Source of the DNA: Phallusia mammillata
Taxonomy: Eukaryota
Assembly (NCBI GenBank): GCA_965637545.1
Contig: OZ281495.1
Coordinates: 23,622,001 to 23,686,000 of the forward strand
Direction: 5' to 3'
Length of the DNA: 64,000 nt
Positions 7,752 through 19,022 of this stretch are shown here, piece after piece. Within the stretch, counting starts at the first letter, position 1. Each line of letters opens with the position of its first letter. Made by a program: the position numbers and the translations under genes. The notes below the pieces were generated by a model. It ran no database searches, was not told where the DNA came from, and saw only the letters and a list, made by a program, of their open reading frames with translations.

Positions 7752-8133
7752 CAGGGTTGCCATATCGTCCTTATTTCTAAGATTTGTCCTTATTTTGAAG
7801 GTCAATGTCGTAGAAAAGTTCATTGTCCTTATTTCTAAGAAATGTCCTTATTTTTGACTTTAGTCCTTCTTTTGTCTTATTTTAAACAATTAGTGGTCAA
7901 ATCCCTGCTACAAGTAAAAGTAAACCTAGACCTGAGCTGTTGTGAGCTGCATGAAGTATTTTCTACGAACAAGGAGCTGCTGGAACAGATTGTTTCTGGC
8001 CAAATATATGGCATGTGATATGTCACAGCTCGTTTAAATGCAAAGATTCGTTCAAAAACGTTTGTTTTGTTTCGCATAAAAATTTAATATTTCGGTTGTC
8101 CTTATTTTTGGTTTCAAGTCGATGGCAACCCTG
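7752..8133. mobile_element. hAT MITE
   Basis: 12-bp TIRs CAGGGTTGCCAT / ATGGCAACCCTG; 8-bp TSD CTTATAGA / CGTATAGA (7/8); internal GTCCTTATTT repeats. Confidence 0.85.
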
Positions 8134-12554: not shown

Positions 12555-15267
12555 GCAAGGACCCCCACATATGCCGTGCTATGTGCAGAAATGCTTGGAA
12601 ACCGGTCTAATTGGGTGTGTATGGCTTTGGGCTGGAACAATGTCGTTTAAGTTTCTTGCTTATGGAAACACAAGTGGTCGAGGTGGAGTTATTTAGAGAA
12701 AAATCTACCAACATTATACTCTTGTTGCGGCTTTGGCTATGTCTTTATTTAGACGATCTCTGTTCTCTCGTCTGTATAAAACGTCACTGATAACAAGCAT
12801 CTGGCCCGGGTCTTTAGACCTTATTTAAAATTTGCCCTTTAATGAGTTTGTCAAGCTGTAGTCACGTATGCCACAAACTCCACAAACTAAAAGACTACAA
12901 CCTCGTTAAAACAATAAAACATATTTATTTTATATCCAACTACTTTGCAATGGCATGAACAGTGCTAAAATGCTGCGCTCTTCTCGGGGATCGAATGTGT
13001 GGATCAGGATAGGATTCCTATGAACAACAAGAAGTTTGAAAAATATTTTACAACGATCACAATTTATCGTTTGTGATTGTTTAAAAATTGTTCTCATTCT
13101 AACTTAGATTAAACTAGCCTATATTTTTCTGGATCTGTGTAATTTTTTTCATAACCATCTTTGCAACAATTGCAAAAAAGTAGGTTTGACTTAACTTTTT
13201 ACTCTGTGCTTATACCACATAACCACAAATATGTTTTACCAGTTTCTTAACTACGACTAACTTGAGGTGCGTAACTTCGCTCGTAGCCTCTTCCAGCTTG
13301 TAACTCCTGGTATTGAACGATGCCAATGAACAAAATGAACACCTGCGTACAATTAAAAATATAGCGTTTAAATTCGCAAGTTGGAATTTAATTATTCTGC
13401 GATTCCGAGGTAGGCTACTTGTGAATTTTAAGCATTGACGTCTAATTTGTAGATCTGCATGGCCAGTTTTTTTTTCGGTAAGATTTAGGTTCGGAATTCA
13501 GATTAAATAAAAGAGCCTTGTTTCTGGCCGGACTTTACACTCGGGCTTAAGTGTGTCTGAAACCGTTGACAAGCAAACGACCTTTGTAATCAATTAAATT
13601 GCAGCTAAAATATAACCCCAAAATGTAAAAAAAAAATTCTTTTTCTCTGAATCTTTTCTTTCAAATACTTTGTCTCCATGTTTTTAAGTTATGTCTGATT
13701 ATAAACAATAGTAAGCCTACTTAGCCAAGAAACTAATTATAAGACTACGAAAAAACATTAAGATACACTTACGTTTAAAACGTTTTTGCCGAGAATAAGA
13801 AGTGCAATGAAAGCCACCAAGCCATCAGAACCTTGTTGTCCAAACAGTGCCACCACGCGGATTTCATCACCTCCGACTGTAAGAAATGCGTTGGAAACGC
13901 GCGTGCATTCTGTCGAATTTGCAACACCAACAAACAGCTGATCGTTTTGGTGTTGTTGCTGTAATACGTTTTTTTATGTTTGTGATCAAAGAATCAAACT
14001 AAATGTGAAAATGTTTACCGCAAGACTCCAGGCGCTGACGAAAAACTGCATGATGTTTCTGAGGCTGTTGAGATTTATTAATCCAACAAAGCTTATAATA
14101 AACTCCGAGATTGAGACTACGAGGTAGGTTAAGAGCCATGGCCTCATCCATTTGTGGTTATCCTGTCGTACATTTGATTTAGCATGTTTTTTTTAGCAAG
14201 CAACAATGTTAACATTTCAAGAAACTTGCCTTCGATACACTGATAACAAAGATCGTTGAAGTGGCGACGGCTAAACTCGAGAAAATAGCAGCAAATGCGT
14301 AAAAAACTTTGACAGCTGTGGCACAAAAGCAGCAATAGTTATGCAGGAAAAACTTTTTTACCAAGATGCTACATTTATTACGTACCAACCGTAAACGGGA
14401 CAATGTAAATTGCGAAGCACGAAAACGCCAAAATTTCGACCACAAACTGTGACTAGAAAAACAAATGGAAAATAAAAATTCCAAACATTACTTGAAATGT
14501 CACAAAAAACATACCAATGAAAATATTCCAGCAATTAGTGCCGCTCTTCTTGGATTATTACAACAAATTTTCATTCTGCAACCTGCCATGTTGTTCTACC
14601 GACTATTTCCTTTGATCCCCACTAATTCAAAAAACTTGCTGTCCTACTGTCAATTACATGTTTAAAACATACATTTACATGAATTTCGTTGTAGTTACTA
14701 GTGCGCAGCGTTTGTTACAAGGGGCAACAAAGAGTGACGCCGCTAGATTGTGTCAATAAAAGTCTAGAATTTCACAAAAATCACAACAAAAGACGCGAAC
14801 AATGGCAAGTACGCTTGTCGGTGCTTGATGTAATTTTTCCGTGTAGATCGTGTATAAGATATTTTATAACCGGTATTTATTTTAATATTCATCGAAAAAA
14901 CAATTTTGATCCATTTCGGTAAATTAATTGTAAAGTGTGTTTCAAGTTTGTACTGCCGAAAATATTTGGATAATTATAATTTTTGTTTTGTGTAACTTGT
15001 AACAAATGGAGCATTGTCAATCAAATAAACAGAAATTGTAAATAATTAACTTCGTAGGCCGAAAATCTACAATGTGTCATGGTTTAAAATAGCAACCACT
15101 AAAGGCTAATTAATTATTTTACTTTATTTCCGCCAAAAGACGCTACAGACCTGTATTTCAGTGGTGTGGCGCAACTTTTTCTTTTTTCTTGTTTTGCGGA
15201 AAAGCATGCTGCGTTGGGTCGTGGACAATTGCCTTTGTTTTGTTGTGTTTTGCAAAACGTTGCAAAA

Positions 15268-16049
15268 ATGACGGAAAGTGAGGAGGTATTCGATATTGGA
15301 TCGCAAGTTCTTGCCACTGGACAGCAGTTTGCATCTTTTAAAGATGTAGAACAAGCTATGAGAACGTATGAAGATGAACAGAAAATAATTTACCGCAAAC
15401 GTGATTCGCGCACATACAAAGCAGCAAAGAAACGGGTTAACATTCCTGAAAATCCCGCTCTGATTTACTACGAACTGAAATATGCATGTATTAAGAAAAC
15501 ACCGAGAAGTAGCCACAAATCACCGGACGAGAAAGTTGCTAACGGGTACGTTTGTTTGGAGTCATACATATGTGGAAATAGTTTTTATTTTAATATCTAA
15601 TATTGTTTGTATTAAATTCGGACGTTTTAACTCTTAATGTTCTCACCATCCATAATATTGCATATTGTTTGACTAGTGGTTATGTTTTAGATAAAGTACC
15701 CAAAACAGTAAGAAATACAGAACCTGTGCCATGTGACACATGTTGTTGTTTTGTAGTGGTTCTGATTGTGAATCTTTCGTTCAATTTCGAACATCAAAAG
15801 ATGGACAAAATTTGGTGGTTACAAAAATGAATACTGTCCACTGTCATCCAATTGATGAGGTATACATGGGAATAAATATTCATGCACCATGTAATGCTTT
15901 TTTGCAAATTACTCGATATTAAGTGATATATTTTTTACCATAAGGATTCATATGAACAACTGAAAACTCGAAGAAAACAAGATAGTCCAAAGAAAAAGAA
16001 TCCTGAACATGACCTGGAACAATCTTCAGCAGAATTAGGTTCTTTATAG
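15268..16049 (+). CDS. FAR1/ZSWIM3-N-like (WRKY-GCM1 fold, MULE-related) Zn DNA-binding domain protein, 3 exons; a separate cistron or the 5' part of KAT8
   Basis: Exons 15268-15545, 15757-15859 and 15945-16049 join in frame via GT-AG introns. Translation: FASFKDVEQAMRTYEDEQKIIYRKRDSRT...LIYYELKYAC...CESFVQFRTSKDGQNLVVTKMNTVHCH, giving C...C-x23-H-x-H. The family call is from pattern recall. Confidence 0.72.
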
Positions 16050-16172
16050 AAAACAAATATAATTTGTTATAATCGCATGTCAAACAAAAGTATTCTTATC
16101 ATCACAATTAATAACATTTCTAAATTTTTCATGACTCAGTTATGTTTAGATTTCAGTTCTGATGACAACAAA

Positions 16173-17543
16173 ATGGACATTGTAACACCTGAAGATAAAA
16201 ATGAAGACGAAAAAGTGTTGCAAGCAGACGCAGACTTGAGCAAGAAAATATCAAATATATCAGAATCACCAATAAAACCAAAGCTTGAGGACACAGATCG
16301 AAGCCATGATGCAAAAATAATGATCAATGGACAGTACTACTGTTGTCGTAGTGATGGAACCACCCACATTGCTGAAGTGATACAAAAGCGCATAAACTCA
16401 TCTCGTGGAGACAGTCATGAATATTATGTGCACTACCATGGTTGTAATCGTCGCCTTGATGAGTGGGTTAATGCTAGTCGTATCGATACATCTAGGGTAG
16501 TCGTAGAAACCAACACAGCAACTACAAAACCTGGTGAAAATACTGAAAATGTTGACAATCGAATGACAAGAAATCAGAAAAGAAAACATGATGAAATAAA
16601 CCATGTTCAAAAGTCTTATGCTGAGATGGATCCTGCAACAGCTGCTTTAGAGAGAGAACATGAAGCTATCACAAAAATCAAATACATTGATAGAATTCAG
16701 CTGGGCAGGTATGAAATTGATGCTTGGTATTTTTCACCATACCCAGATGAATATGGAAAACAACCCAAACTCTATGTTTGTGAGTTTTGTTTCAAGTACA
16801 TGCGGCTAGAGTGTACCTACAGAAGACATCTCACTGACTGCACATGGCGACAACCACCTGGAAAGGAAATCTACAGAAAATCTACAATATCTGTTTATGA
16901 AATCGATGGCAAAGATAACAAAATTTATTGCCAGAATCTGTGTCTGTTGGCCAAACTGTTTTTGGATCATAAAACACTGTACTTTGACGTCGAGCCATTT
17001 CTCTTTTATGTGATGACTGAAGTAGATAGAAGTGGAGCTCATGTAGTTGGATACTTTTCAAAAGAGAAAGAAAGTCCAGATGGAAACAATTTGGCATGCA
17101 TTTTAATACTTCCACCCTTCCAAAGAAAAGGGTATGGAAAATTTTTGATCGCCTTTAGTTATGAGTTGTCAAAGATTGAGCGCATGATTGGTTCGCCAGA
17201 GAAGCCGTTGTCTGATTTGGGAAAGTTAAGCTACAGAAGTTATTGGACTTGGGTTCTTTTGGAAATTCTTCGGGATTTCCGGGGCACTCTTTCCATCAAG
17301 GATTTAAGTGAAATGACCAGTATTACTCAGTCCGATATCATTTCTTCTCTGCAATCACTTAACATGGTAAAATACTGGAAGGGACAACATGTAATTTGTG
17401 TCACTCAAAAACATATTGAAGAACACTTAAAGTCTCAGTTCTTTAAAAGACCAAGATTGCCTGTGGATACAGCTTTTTTGCGATGGCATCCTAAAAAGAA
17501 AAGCTTAGCATCGAAGAAAGAGACTACGCAGCACAAAAAATAA
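16173..17543 (+). CDS. KAT8: Histone acetyltransferase KAT8/MOF (MYST1), no internal introns
   Basis: Chromobarrel [16 protein letters not shown]; MOF-specific [22 protein letters not shown]; C2HC finger CEFC; [11 protein letters not shown]; [15 protein letters not shown]; [11 protein letters not shown]. First ATG after the 16149 acceptor is 16173 (456 aa). ORF bases 16077-16149 look intronic. Confidence 0.96.
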
Positions 17544-17728
17544 CTTGTTTTGTTAAAAGCAACATTTGTTGTTGTGAAATAAAATGTTCTGAATGGTTTG
17601 CTACACTTTTTTCAGACTGGTCATGTTCCAGAATACCTTGTGATATACATATTATTTTTATGATGTATCTGTGAGTTTTGTAACAAAAACGTTTTTTTTA
17701 GATTTCAAAATGTAAGAAAAAATAAATA

Positions 17729-18184
17729 ATGAGTAATCAACCAACTAATGTGGTAGTGCTCGGTGAAGCATCTGAAAGTGATGAAGAAATTGAAGATCAA
17801 CATGATCGAGAAAAATGTGAGGATTTAAAGTCATTACCTACCAAAGTGGAGCAATCGCCAATAAAACCAGTTTTACCTTTACCGATGGCTGCTGTACCCA
17901 CAAAACCAAAGTATGATTCAATTTTGCACCTCAAGTTGAAGGAGGCAAACCTAAGATTGACAGCATCGCTGGATCCTTCCGAAAACAAGGCATTTCGAGA
18001 AATGATCGCTTCAATGAAACGAACAAGACAAAAGCTTGATACTTCCCAAGGTTTGGCTGTGAATAGCTCAAACAACATCCGATCAAACATAGCAAATTTA
18101 AAATCAACAATTTCGTGTATTGATTCTATCAATAAACATTCAGCAGTGGTTTTACCCCAATTCATTGATTTGCAACAAACATGA
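17729..18184 (+). CDS. BLOC1S3: BLOC-1 subunit 3 homolog
   Basis: 151-aa single-exon ORF with VVVLGEASESDEE (cf. VAGEAAETDSE), SILHLKLKEANLRL (cf. SLLQLRLAESQARL) and a coiled-coil-like C-terminus. Confidence 0.75.
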   Translation: MSNQPTNVVVLGEASESDEEIEDQHDREKCEDLKSLPTKVEQSPIKPVLPLPMAAVPTKPKYDSILHLKLKEANLRLTASLDPSENKAFREMIASMKRTRQKLDTSQGLAVNSSNNIRSNIANLKSTISCIDSINKHSAVVLPQFIDLQQT

Positions 18185-19022
18185 AATATAGTTTAATCTG
18201 AAGCACATCCATTATAAATCTGACCCATCAACAGTTGGTGCCTTAAATATTTCAAAATGAAAGCTTGTCATTGTTAAGGCAGTGTTTGATCCTCGTAAAA
18301 AACAATGTTTATTGACACACTGCGAATATTTAAAATAAAAATGTTTATGTGAAAGTCATCCAAAACTTTGTGGGATTACAAAGCATGTCTAAGTCCTGCT
18401 TTTATTGAATTTGTTTCCTTTTCTTAGTATATATATCTGTTTTTGCTGTGCAATAATAAGTTTGTCTTTTACGTTTTATTTTGGCATTTGCTTCAGTTTC
18501 ATCTTCCAGTCTGTGAGATAAAATTATTCAGAAGAAGAAAATAAATGATCACATAATTGTTTTAGCTAAAAGATTCAAACTGGTTGAACTAAAGAGCTAC
18601 ATTTCAATCATTCTGTCCTGCTTACCCAGAGTCATACTGCACTGTTGGCACTGATCTAATTCAAAAAAGGCACTTTGCAGATTTATTGTAGACAGGCGCC
18701 ATAAACATCATATTAAACAAACATAAGCATTTTTTCAGGGGTAAAACTCTTAAAACACATAAAAGTACAGATGCAAAGTAAGACAATGTCTGGAAAACAA
18801 TACAGCTTCACCACAATGTTCACAAGACTAACAGTTATTACAAAAAAAAGCAAATCCTATTTTTCTTGTGCTCTAGTAAAGCAAAAAAACTCCGTTTGAC
18901 AGATTTTGCTCACTTGATAACCAACAAATTGAATGCAAAGACACAGAGTGAACTGTTTATCAATGTCCAAAGAATAAATTAGCTCATTGCACTTGAATTT
19001 GTTGCCCTTTATCCATGTATAA

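Follow-up and report, generated by a model that had tools for sequence, protein, structure and literature searches.

The KAT8/MOF locus of Phallusia mammillata is one gene and not two: three short 5' exons are cis-spliced onto an otherwise intronless exon for KAT8/MOF, the enzyme chiefly responsible for H4K16 acetylation in animals. The spliced open reading frame (1869 nt) encodes a 622-aa chimera with a zinc domain, a basic linker, a chromobarrel, a C2HC finger and the MYST acetyltransferase, in that order. I consider it nearly certain that this fusion gene is real and selected, and I place roughly 70% on the whole explanation developed here, which adds to the cis-spliced gene and its 622-aa product a proposed origin and a DNA-tethering function for the captured domain. 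The spliced frame had been predicted by the initial annotation from the DNA letters and turns out to be identical to a deposited protein, CAB3257918.1 / A0A6F9DFR9 ("histone acetyltransferase KAT8-like [Phallusia mammillata]", 622 aa); the chimera sequence is thus already public, under a database name that omits the extra zinc domain. Literature searches returned no paper naming Phallusia together with KAT8, and no description of a MYST/transposase-domain fusion.

Within the window (the whole 64-kb stretch of DNA that was analysed), the gene lies on the forward strand and begins with a 5' UTR at 15135-15267, in which transcript contigs start at 15135-15198 and a 21-codon upstream ORF (15206-15271) ends in a TGA that overlaps the main ATG at 15268. 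Coding exon 1 (15268-15545; aa 1-92 plus 2 nt) encodes the first two thirds of a ZSWIM3_N domain, with its conserved RKRDSRT strand and the predicted zinc ligand nearest the N-terminus, C74 (15487-15489), and is separated by intron 1 (15546-15756, 211 nt) from coding exon 2 (15757-15859; aa 93-127), which supplies the last third of the domain with the predicted ligand codons C97 (15767-15769), H121 (15839-15841) and H123 (15845-15847). After intron 2 (15860-15944, 85 nt), coding exon 3 (15945-16038; aa 128-158 plus 1 nt) encodes a basic linker, KTRRKQDSPKKKN, that resembles a nuclear localisation signal, and ends at the phase-1 donor G|GTTCTT (16038/16039), 8 nt before a TAG. That in-frame TAG (16047-16049) falls inside intron 3 (16039-16149, 111 nt, 23% G+C, no AATAAA and only an AATATA at 16056), and retention of the intron would give a stand-alone protein of 161 aa. 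The acceptor TGTTTAG|AT (16149/16150) opens coding exon 4 (16150-17543, stop codon 17541-17543) in the KAT8 frame, where eight bridging codons, DFSSDDNK (16150-16172 plus the G of 16038), lead to the KAT8/MOF body at Met 16173, from which internal start a 456-aa protein would result; the exon carries Tudor-knot (16329-16490), zf-MYST (16677-16841) and MOZ_SAS (16854-17387) domains. The 3' UTR (17544-17692) has an AATAAA at 17578-17583, with the X2 and X3 contigs ending at 17675 and 17692. An Rfam scan of 14000-18600 gave no match.

Three GT-AG-joined exons, the phase-1 donor and the acceptor beyond 111 AT-rich nucleotides had been proposed in the initial annotation, and they stand in the sequence and, for the joints, in transcript contigs of four runs from four independent studies, every one of which lacks 15546-15756, 15860-15944 and 16039-16149 precisely, each gap being flanked by GT..AG. 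The runs consist of assembled contigs whose RNA status is presumed, a presumption well supported by this loss of introns and in keeping with the absence of depth over the intergenic DNA upstream of the gene; being contigs, they cannot reveal minor isoforms, abundance or true 5' and 3' ends. Exact-sequence look-ups with the Ciona KAT8, the 622-aa chimera and the 456-aa MOF returned no contigs. The in-frame joint of the upstream exons to KAT8/MOF is beyond chance, because the three joints recur in the contigs of four studies and the frame is kept in a second species, described below.

The identity of the larger part of the protein is straightforward. Pfam profiles matched the 622-aa sequence far above their cut-offs for Tudor-knot (PF11717, 66.5 bits), zf-MYST (PF17772, 86.8 bits) and MOZ_SAS (PF01853, 293 bits with the cut-off at 32), and the acetyl-CoA motif (Q/R-x-x-G-x-G) and DHKTLYFDV are intact, the catalytic residues presumably lying within these MYST motifs as they do in human MOF. 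The closest named proteins among the best 120 relatives listed are all KAT8, and in a tree from which other MYST subfamilies (Tip60, HBO1, MOZ) were left out the chimera nests among tunicate KAT8s; by sequence, then, residues 167-622 are a KAT8/MOF orthologue. It shares with KAT8/MOF the chromobarrel, the C2HC zf-MYST finger and MOZ_SAS, but differs in 166 extra N-terminal residues with the ZSWIM3_N zinc domain, a domain absent from all 120 of those relatives; conversely, MOZ_SAS was absent from all 10 of the best long ZSWIM3_N proteins scanned.

The extra domain had been called FAR1/ZSWIM3-N by eye, with a C...C-x23-H-x-H pattern, and profile searches agree: ZSWIM3_N (PF21599) matches residues 17-123 at 56.8 bits (cut-off 27.8) and covers positions 3-102 of the 102-position profile, exon 1 by itself scores 42.4 bits, and FAR1 (PF03101) matches exon 2 weakly, at 14 bits and below threshold. 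The pattern reads C74-x22-C97-x23-H121-x-H123, and in a 53-sequence family alignment C74 is invariant, the other predicted ligands are conserved in full-length members and the R-D-S-R-T strand is conserved. In the same alignment a glycine that hardly varies stands after the first Cys, but the P. mammillata protein has T78 at that position, and its zinc domain has therefore diverged. A single-sequence AlphaFold model of residues 1-235 reached a pLDDT of only 38, and the 53-member alignment was required to obtain an AF2 model of the zinc domain with a pLDDT of 84.9 and a pTM of 0.76, which predicts a four-stranded sheet (strands 42-49, 67-74, 100-105 and 112-118). Its top PDB match is the DNA-bound AFT2 chain 4lmg_A, of the WRKY-GCM1 fold (Z 7.2, rmsd 2.5 Å over 85 residues; the next chain has Z 4.4), followed by WRKY1, WRKY18, WRKY33, FLYWCH and GCM; the Foldseek E-values of the matches as a whole are weak (0.02-0.3). 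Sequence searches were less generous: exon 1 had no phmmer match among PDB sequences, a homologous-protein search with exon 1 found the ORF of a sister species as its sole match, and the same search with residues 1-166 was blank, which says little because another sequence stands as the representative of the chimera's 90% cluster. Among the nearest relatives by sequence are ZSWIM1-like proteins that have ZSWIM1-3 RNaseH-like, MULE and SWIM domains, and ZSWIM3_N is also found fused to BEN and other domains.

That sister species (contig L001) is where selection on the captured exons can be read, and it answers the call to look for the fusion in related tunicates, since the same exons, splice phases (phase-1 donor and acceptor) and frame are kept there in a 625-aa ORF. 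The zinc domain is 82% identical between the two species, with a pN of 0.108 against a saturated pS of 0.755 (pN/pS about 0.14), and neither has lost the predicted ligands or the basic R-K-R-D-S-R-T strand; the native MOF N-tail is only 39% identical. The eight bridging codons that precede the MOF Met differ by six synonymous and no non-synonymous changes, and they are therefore translated, which is possible only in the fusion frame. From these comparisons, the captured zinc domain and the bridging codons are under strong purifying selection.

What the domain does is a more delicate question. WRKY, GCM, FLYWCH, FAR1 and AFT domains, which share this fold, bind DNA, and I would give about even odds that the captured domain acts in the same way. 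It is plausible that it gives MOF its own sequence-specific targeting: canonical MOF is recruited via the MSL/NSL complexes (PMC6607013), and the zinc domain would itself tether the enzyme to certain DNA sequences, which might be remnants of a cognate transposon's ends, with H4K16 acetylation then placed at the tethered sites in addition to the MSL/NSL-guided targets. The strongest competing explanation, to which I would give something like one chance in six, accepts the fusion as real and selected but holds that the domain no longer reads DNA sequence and works as a protein-protein, RNA-binding or regulatory module, one that might control complex assembly or, together with the basic linker, nuclear import. 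The replacement of the near-invariant family glycine at position 78, the versatility implied by the fusions of ZSWIM3_N to BEN and other domains, and fold matches that are moderate (Foldseek E 0.02; Z 7.2) would all suit such a role; however, the best structural match is a WRKY-GCM1 domain caught on DNA, domains of the same fold are DNA binders, and both species have retained the zinc ligands and the basic strand.

An alternative already raised in the initial annotation is that the zinc ORF and MOF are two cistrons of an operon. On this reading the AG at 16149 would serve mainly as a spliced-leader acceptor that yields a normal 456-aa MOF, with the cis-spliced chimera as a minor product, or, in a weaker form, a minor trans-spliced MOF would coexist with the chimera. 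Operons of the Ciona type are resolved by SL trans-splicing (PMC1488885), and this organism does trans-splice: BLOC1S3 (17700-18184 on the forward strand, CDS 17729-18184), a gene outside the fusion, lies head to tail with the fusion gene, about 185 nt away, and carries the Ciona-type leader ATTCTATTTGAATAAG joined at the AG of 17700-17701. The place at which the locus is trans-spliced is shown by the leader at 17700. The MOF Met at 16173 is conserved in the sister species, and a species of the sister lineage has an acceptor 14 nt before its KAT8 ATG and no zinc domain found upstream. Yet all four KAT8 contigs cross from 16038 to 16150, no leader was called at 16150 in any of the four runs although the same data have one at 17700, the 111 nt between the supposed cistrons lack a poly(A) signal, the deposited protein is the chimera, and the bridging codons have remained free of amino acid change at saturated divergence. 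The resemblance to Ciona-type operons therefore stops at BLOC1S3, the zinc-domain/KAT8 junction being cis-spliced in the contigs rather than trans-spliced between cistrons, and I reject an operon as the source of the main product on the cis-splicing of four out of four contigs and the selection on the bridging codons; a minor trans-spliced isoform may exist, because contigs drop rare forms, and the two versions together seem improbable to me. The least credible proposal, that two neighbouring genes were accidentally joined by non-functional read-through or by assembly or annotation, draws on the fact that these are contigs only and that one contig over two genes proves no single transcript, and I reject it as very nearly untenable because exact GT..AG excision cannot arise from an assembler, the same joint recurs in four studies, and the frame, phases and amino acids across it are kept in the sister species despite saturated synonymous sites.

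Returning to the single cis-spliced fusion gene, its distribution indicates a derived, lineage-restricted state. The two carriers, P. mammillata and L001, are sisters in the KAT8 tree, and tblastn and profile searches of the flanks (L002-L008) found no ZSWIM3_N in the 6-8 kb that precede KAT8 in three further tunicate species sampled, nor do the annotated Ciona and Styela KAT8 proteins contain it, an absence that covers those 6-8 kb flanks and annotated proteins only. Exon 1 of the divergent upstream neighbour, compared in order to delimit the insertion, is conserved in L001 only and not in L005-L008. I propose that in the Phallusia lineage a DNA-binding module of ZSWIM/MULE type inserted 5' of KAT8 and that its donor site captured the 3' splice site ahead of the MOF start codon, which may formerly have been a spliced-leader acceptor. 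The break between exons 1 and 2 is shared with relatives, which hints at an intron-bearing donor, and the immediate source may have been either an active MULE or a ZSWIM-type gene domesticated beforehand; the window yielded no cognate transposon and no terminal inverted repeats, and the surroundings of the nearest ZSWIM3_N ORFs (L009, L010) gave no clue to the donor element. The boldest version of this scenario, which I entertain only tentatively and would wager against, is that the MOF of this ascidian lineage, of which no second copy was seen in the DNA analysed, has become a self-targeting, sequence-specific H4K16 acetyltransferase, in which a captured MULE-type domain reads dispersed transposon relics and wires a new set of loci to MOF independently of MSL/NSL, the capture itself possibly having followed a route that only trans-splicing genomes offer, in which an upstream donor hijacked a spliced-leader acceptor.

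There are known parallels to such a protein. ZSWIM1/ZSWIM3 and FAR1/FHY3 are domesticated MULE transposases, and with these and AFT1/AFT2 the chimera shares an N-terminal domain family (ZSWIM3_N, weakly FAR1) and a C-C-H-H zinc site; however, the ZSWIM and FAR1 proteins keep a transposase core and a SWIM finger, and AFT1/AFT2, with their WRKY-GCM1 fold, are stand-alone transcription factors, whereas in the chimera an enzyme has received this domain and nothing else of such proteins. Transposase capture as a source of host-transposase fusion genes has been surveyed in tetrapods (Cosby et al., bioRxiv 10.1101/2020.05.07.082677), and the likeness is that a DNA-binding-type domain, of probable transposase ancestry in the Phallusia case, is spliced to a host gene with a chromatin or regulatory role and then held by purifying selection. 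The nearest analogue is SETMAR, a SET histone methyltransferase joined to a mariner transposase, the host part being a histone-modifying enzyme in both cases. The Phallusia chimera differs in being ascidian, in drawing on a MULE/ZSWIM-type domain rather than mariner, hAT or piggyBac, in carrying that domain N-terminally, upstream of the host gene and by way of an acceptor before the host start codon, and in keeping the DNA-binding-type module alone.

The fusion is confined to one lineage, its protein sequence is public and its function is putative; within those limits, what has been found is a natural MOF that bears a zinc domain of WRKY-GCM1 type, which two species have conserved under selection. 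Phallusia mammillata is a tractable embryological model, with transparent eggs and mRNA injection, and the targeting idea is therefore directly testable. The locus also suggests that, in genomes that trans-splice, an acceptor lying before a start codon can make it easier for genes to fuse. If the reading is true, nature would here have run an experiment in redirecting a chromatin writer, and transposase capture, surveyed so far in tetrapods, would reach tunicates and an acetyltransferase as well, with SETMAR as the methyltransferase counterpart.

The gene at 15268-17543 (+) is read here, with a probability of about 95%, as a genuine fusion in which three exons encoding a zinc domain are spliced in frame onto a KAT8/MOF exon (16150-17543). 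On re-reading the sequence, the structure proposed in the initial annotation was recovered throughout: the start codon lies at 15268, the GT..AG-bounded coding exons 1-3 (all +) occupy 15268-15545, 15757-15859 and 15945-16038, the donor G|GTTCTT at 16038/16039 and the acceptor TGTTTAG|AT at 16149/16150 are both phase 1, the latter in the frame of the long intronless KAT8 ORF, and joining 16038 to 16150 gives an ORF of 1869 nt (622 aa). The 111-nt intron between them (16039-16149) is AT-rich as described (23% G+C) and lacks AATAAA, with AATATA at 16056 only. Exons 1-3 read on to the TAG at 16047-16049 would encode 161 aa, and translation from the first Met past the acceptor (16173) would yield 456 aa. 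Another acceptor of consensus-like sequence, ATTTCAG|TT at 16156/16157, lies 7 nt 3' of the one used; it would break the fusion frame, and none of the four transcript contigs uses it.

These contigs come from four runs of four different studies, aligned over 14600-18400. Each run has one contig that begins within 15135-15198 and spans the whole KAT8 exon, and all four lack exactly 15546-15756, 15860-15944 and 16039-16149, each a GT..AG excision after the alignment tool's stated cut offsets; since depth is zero in the upstream intergenic DNA and in the introns, the material is RNA-derived, a status that the tool itself assigns only as a guess. An artefact is effectively excluded, as the same three excisions recur in the contigs of four studies. 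The initial annotation had also allowed for an operon in which 16149 is a trans-splice site, releasing a 456-aa MOF; this is unlikely to be the main product, because none of the four runs has leader letters reported at 16150 and all four contigs carry the cis joint there; it may be made as a minor isoform beside the chimera. Trans-splicing is instead visible one gene further on, at the boundary between KAT8 and BLOC1S3 (CDS 17729-18184, +; Pfam PF15753), where a BLOC1S3 contig of run X2 opens with GATTCTATTTGAATA, attached at the AG of 17700-17701, letters that match the Ciona spliced leader ATTCTATTTGAATAAG (PMC1488885). The fusion gene and BLOC1S3 (17544-18184) look like a two-gene operon of the Ciona type, and the adjacency of KAT8 and BLOC1S3 is conserved in the contigs L001 and L005-L008 of other tunicates. 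Contigs of runs X1 and X17 span both genes; in X2 and X3 they are interrupted at 17675/17692.

Upstream, a 21-codon uORF (15206-15271) ends in a TGA overlapping the main start codon (ATGA), which could place the fusion gene under termination-reinitiation control; short uORFs occur in L001 too, without this overlap. A divergent neighbour gene begins at about 14512-14589 (-) with MAGCRMKICCNNPRR and is conserved in L001 (23-100), and the block 14676-14805 between it and the fusion-gene start is 75% identical to L001 222-349; together these conserved stretches suggest that about 550 bp serve both genes as a bidirectional promoter region. No counterpart of this neighbour turned up near KAT8 in L005-L008.

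Pfam searches with the separate pieces and with the full-length spliced product find ZSWIM3_N (PF21599; residues 17-123) with 56.8 bits, where the cut-off is 27.8, followed by Tudor-knot (219-272), zf-MYST (335-389) and MOZ_SAS (394-571; 293 bits), with a weak FAR1 match on exon 2; the profile search proposed for the spliced peptide thus returned ZSWIM3_N above its cut-off. The zinc ligands follow the pattern C74-x22-C97-x23-H121-x-H123, and the basic R-K-R-D-S-R-T strand is conserved. Exon 1 has 108 relatives among 1.84 billion cluster representatives, and ZSWIM3_N is present in all ten that were scanned, some with further domains: two are "ZSWIM1-like" proteins with ZSWIM1-3 RNaseH-like and MULE domains (one with a weak SWIM match just below cut-off), a third is BEND7 of a fish, which pairs ZSWIM3_N with BEN, and none of the ten carries MOZ_SAS. 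An AlphaFold model built from a 53-sequence family alignment (pLDDT 84.9, pTM 0.76) consists of a single helix and a sheet of four strands; its top Foldseek matches in the PDB are DNA-bound AFT2, WRKY domains and FLYWCH, and exhaustive structural alignment returns AFT2 (4lmg_A; Z 7.2, rmsd 2.5 A over 85 residues) ahead of the next chain (4.4), with WRKY, FLYWCH and GCM further down. Taken together, profiles, relatives and structure uphold the original call of a MULE/FAR1-type domain of WRKY-GCM1 fold.

The search for the fusion in related tunicates found it in L001, a 5.3-kb genomic contig (run DRR090687) of an ascidian that is sister to P. mammillata in the KAT8 tree, with the same order of ZSWIM3_N exons, KAT8 and BLOC1S3, matching exon boundaries and phases, and a spliced ORF of 625 aa. 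Its third intron has 64 nt rather than 111, with a phase-1 donor (CTAG|GTTTAA) and a phase-1 acceptor (TTGCAG|AC). Synonymous sites are saturated between the two species (pS ~0.75-0.8), and against this the proposed check for selection gave pN 0.108 for the zinc domain (82% identity) and 0.033 for the chromobarrel-MYST body (95%); the linker is 71% and the native MOF N-terminal tail 39% identical. The 8 bridging codons (DFSSDDNK) that separate the acceptor from the "MOF Met" encode 100% identical residues, with 6 synonymous and 0 non-synonymous differences, and because the only upstream ATG after splicing is that of the zinc domain, this constraint is explained only by a translated fusion frame.

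The KAT8 tree has the topology (Ciona, (species of the tunicate protein P0243, (Phallusia, L001 species))). No ZSWIM3_N was found by tblastn and family profile (alignment A1) within 6-8 kb of KAT8 in the contigs of three other tunicate species (L002, L003/L004, L005-L008), nor in the annotated KAT8 of Ciona intestinalis (464 aa) and Styela clava (452 aa), and the simplest reading of these flanks and proteins would be a single gain in the stem lineage shared by Phallusia and its sister. L005, from a sister-lineage species without the zinc domain near KAT8, has a strong acceptor, TTTTTGCCTGCAG|G (7974-8003), 14 nt upstream of the KAT8 ATG; this acceptor is likewise phase 1, and the frame is open. 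It is a candidate for the ancestral leader acceptor that was captured later. Its position agrees with a scheme in which a 3' splice site, possibly a leader acceptor, closely preceded the KAT8 start codon in the ancestor, and in which a donor newly placed upstream would have taken that site over. ZSWIM3_N relatives in other eukaryotic genomes (L009 5953-6634; L010 5977-6264 and 8940-9107) are also interrupted soon past the first zinc-binding Cys, and the remainder of the domain lies downstream; the intron between exons 1 and 2 may be older than the capture, in which case the donor gene or element would itself have contained an intron.

The locus makes one cis-spliced mRNA with one conserved ORF, in which the MYST core (by its motifs) and the zinc-ligand set are intact. 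Domains with this fold from the AFT, WRKY, GCM, FLYWCH and FAR1 families bind DNA, and by analogy the zinc domain would do so too, bringing MOF, and hence H4K16 acetylation, to specific sites. The odds of such DNA-directed targeting seem to us about even, the rival being that the domain is re-used for protein or RNA contacts. The target sites may be remnants left by the cognate transposon, with SETMAR and other host-transposase fusions (Cosby et al., bioRxiv 10.1101/2020.05.07.082677) as analogues.

The capture of transposase domains by host genes is of a known kind, the KAT8 and ZSWIM3_N families are known, and the protein itself is public: clustering at 90% identity groups the closest database KAT8 with a 622-aa protein, "histone acetyltransferase KAT8-like [Phallusia mammillata]" (CAB3257918.1, UniProt A0A6F9DFR9), identical over its full length to the ORF spliced from the window, under a name silent on the extra domain. 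Within the library searched, no paper names both Phallusia and KAT8, and further literature searches found no description of a MYST/transposase-domain fusion. What is new is the recognition that this KAT8 is chimeric and conserved as such, with a DNA-binding-type domain of WRKY-GCM1 fold, together with comparative evidence for selection across the splice joint, an apparent lineage restriction and the part that an acceptor close to the start codon may have played in a genome that trans-splices. The fusion is a real, testable oddity in a model ascidian, and its function is a proposal.
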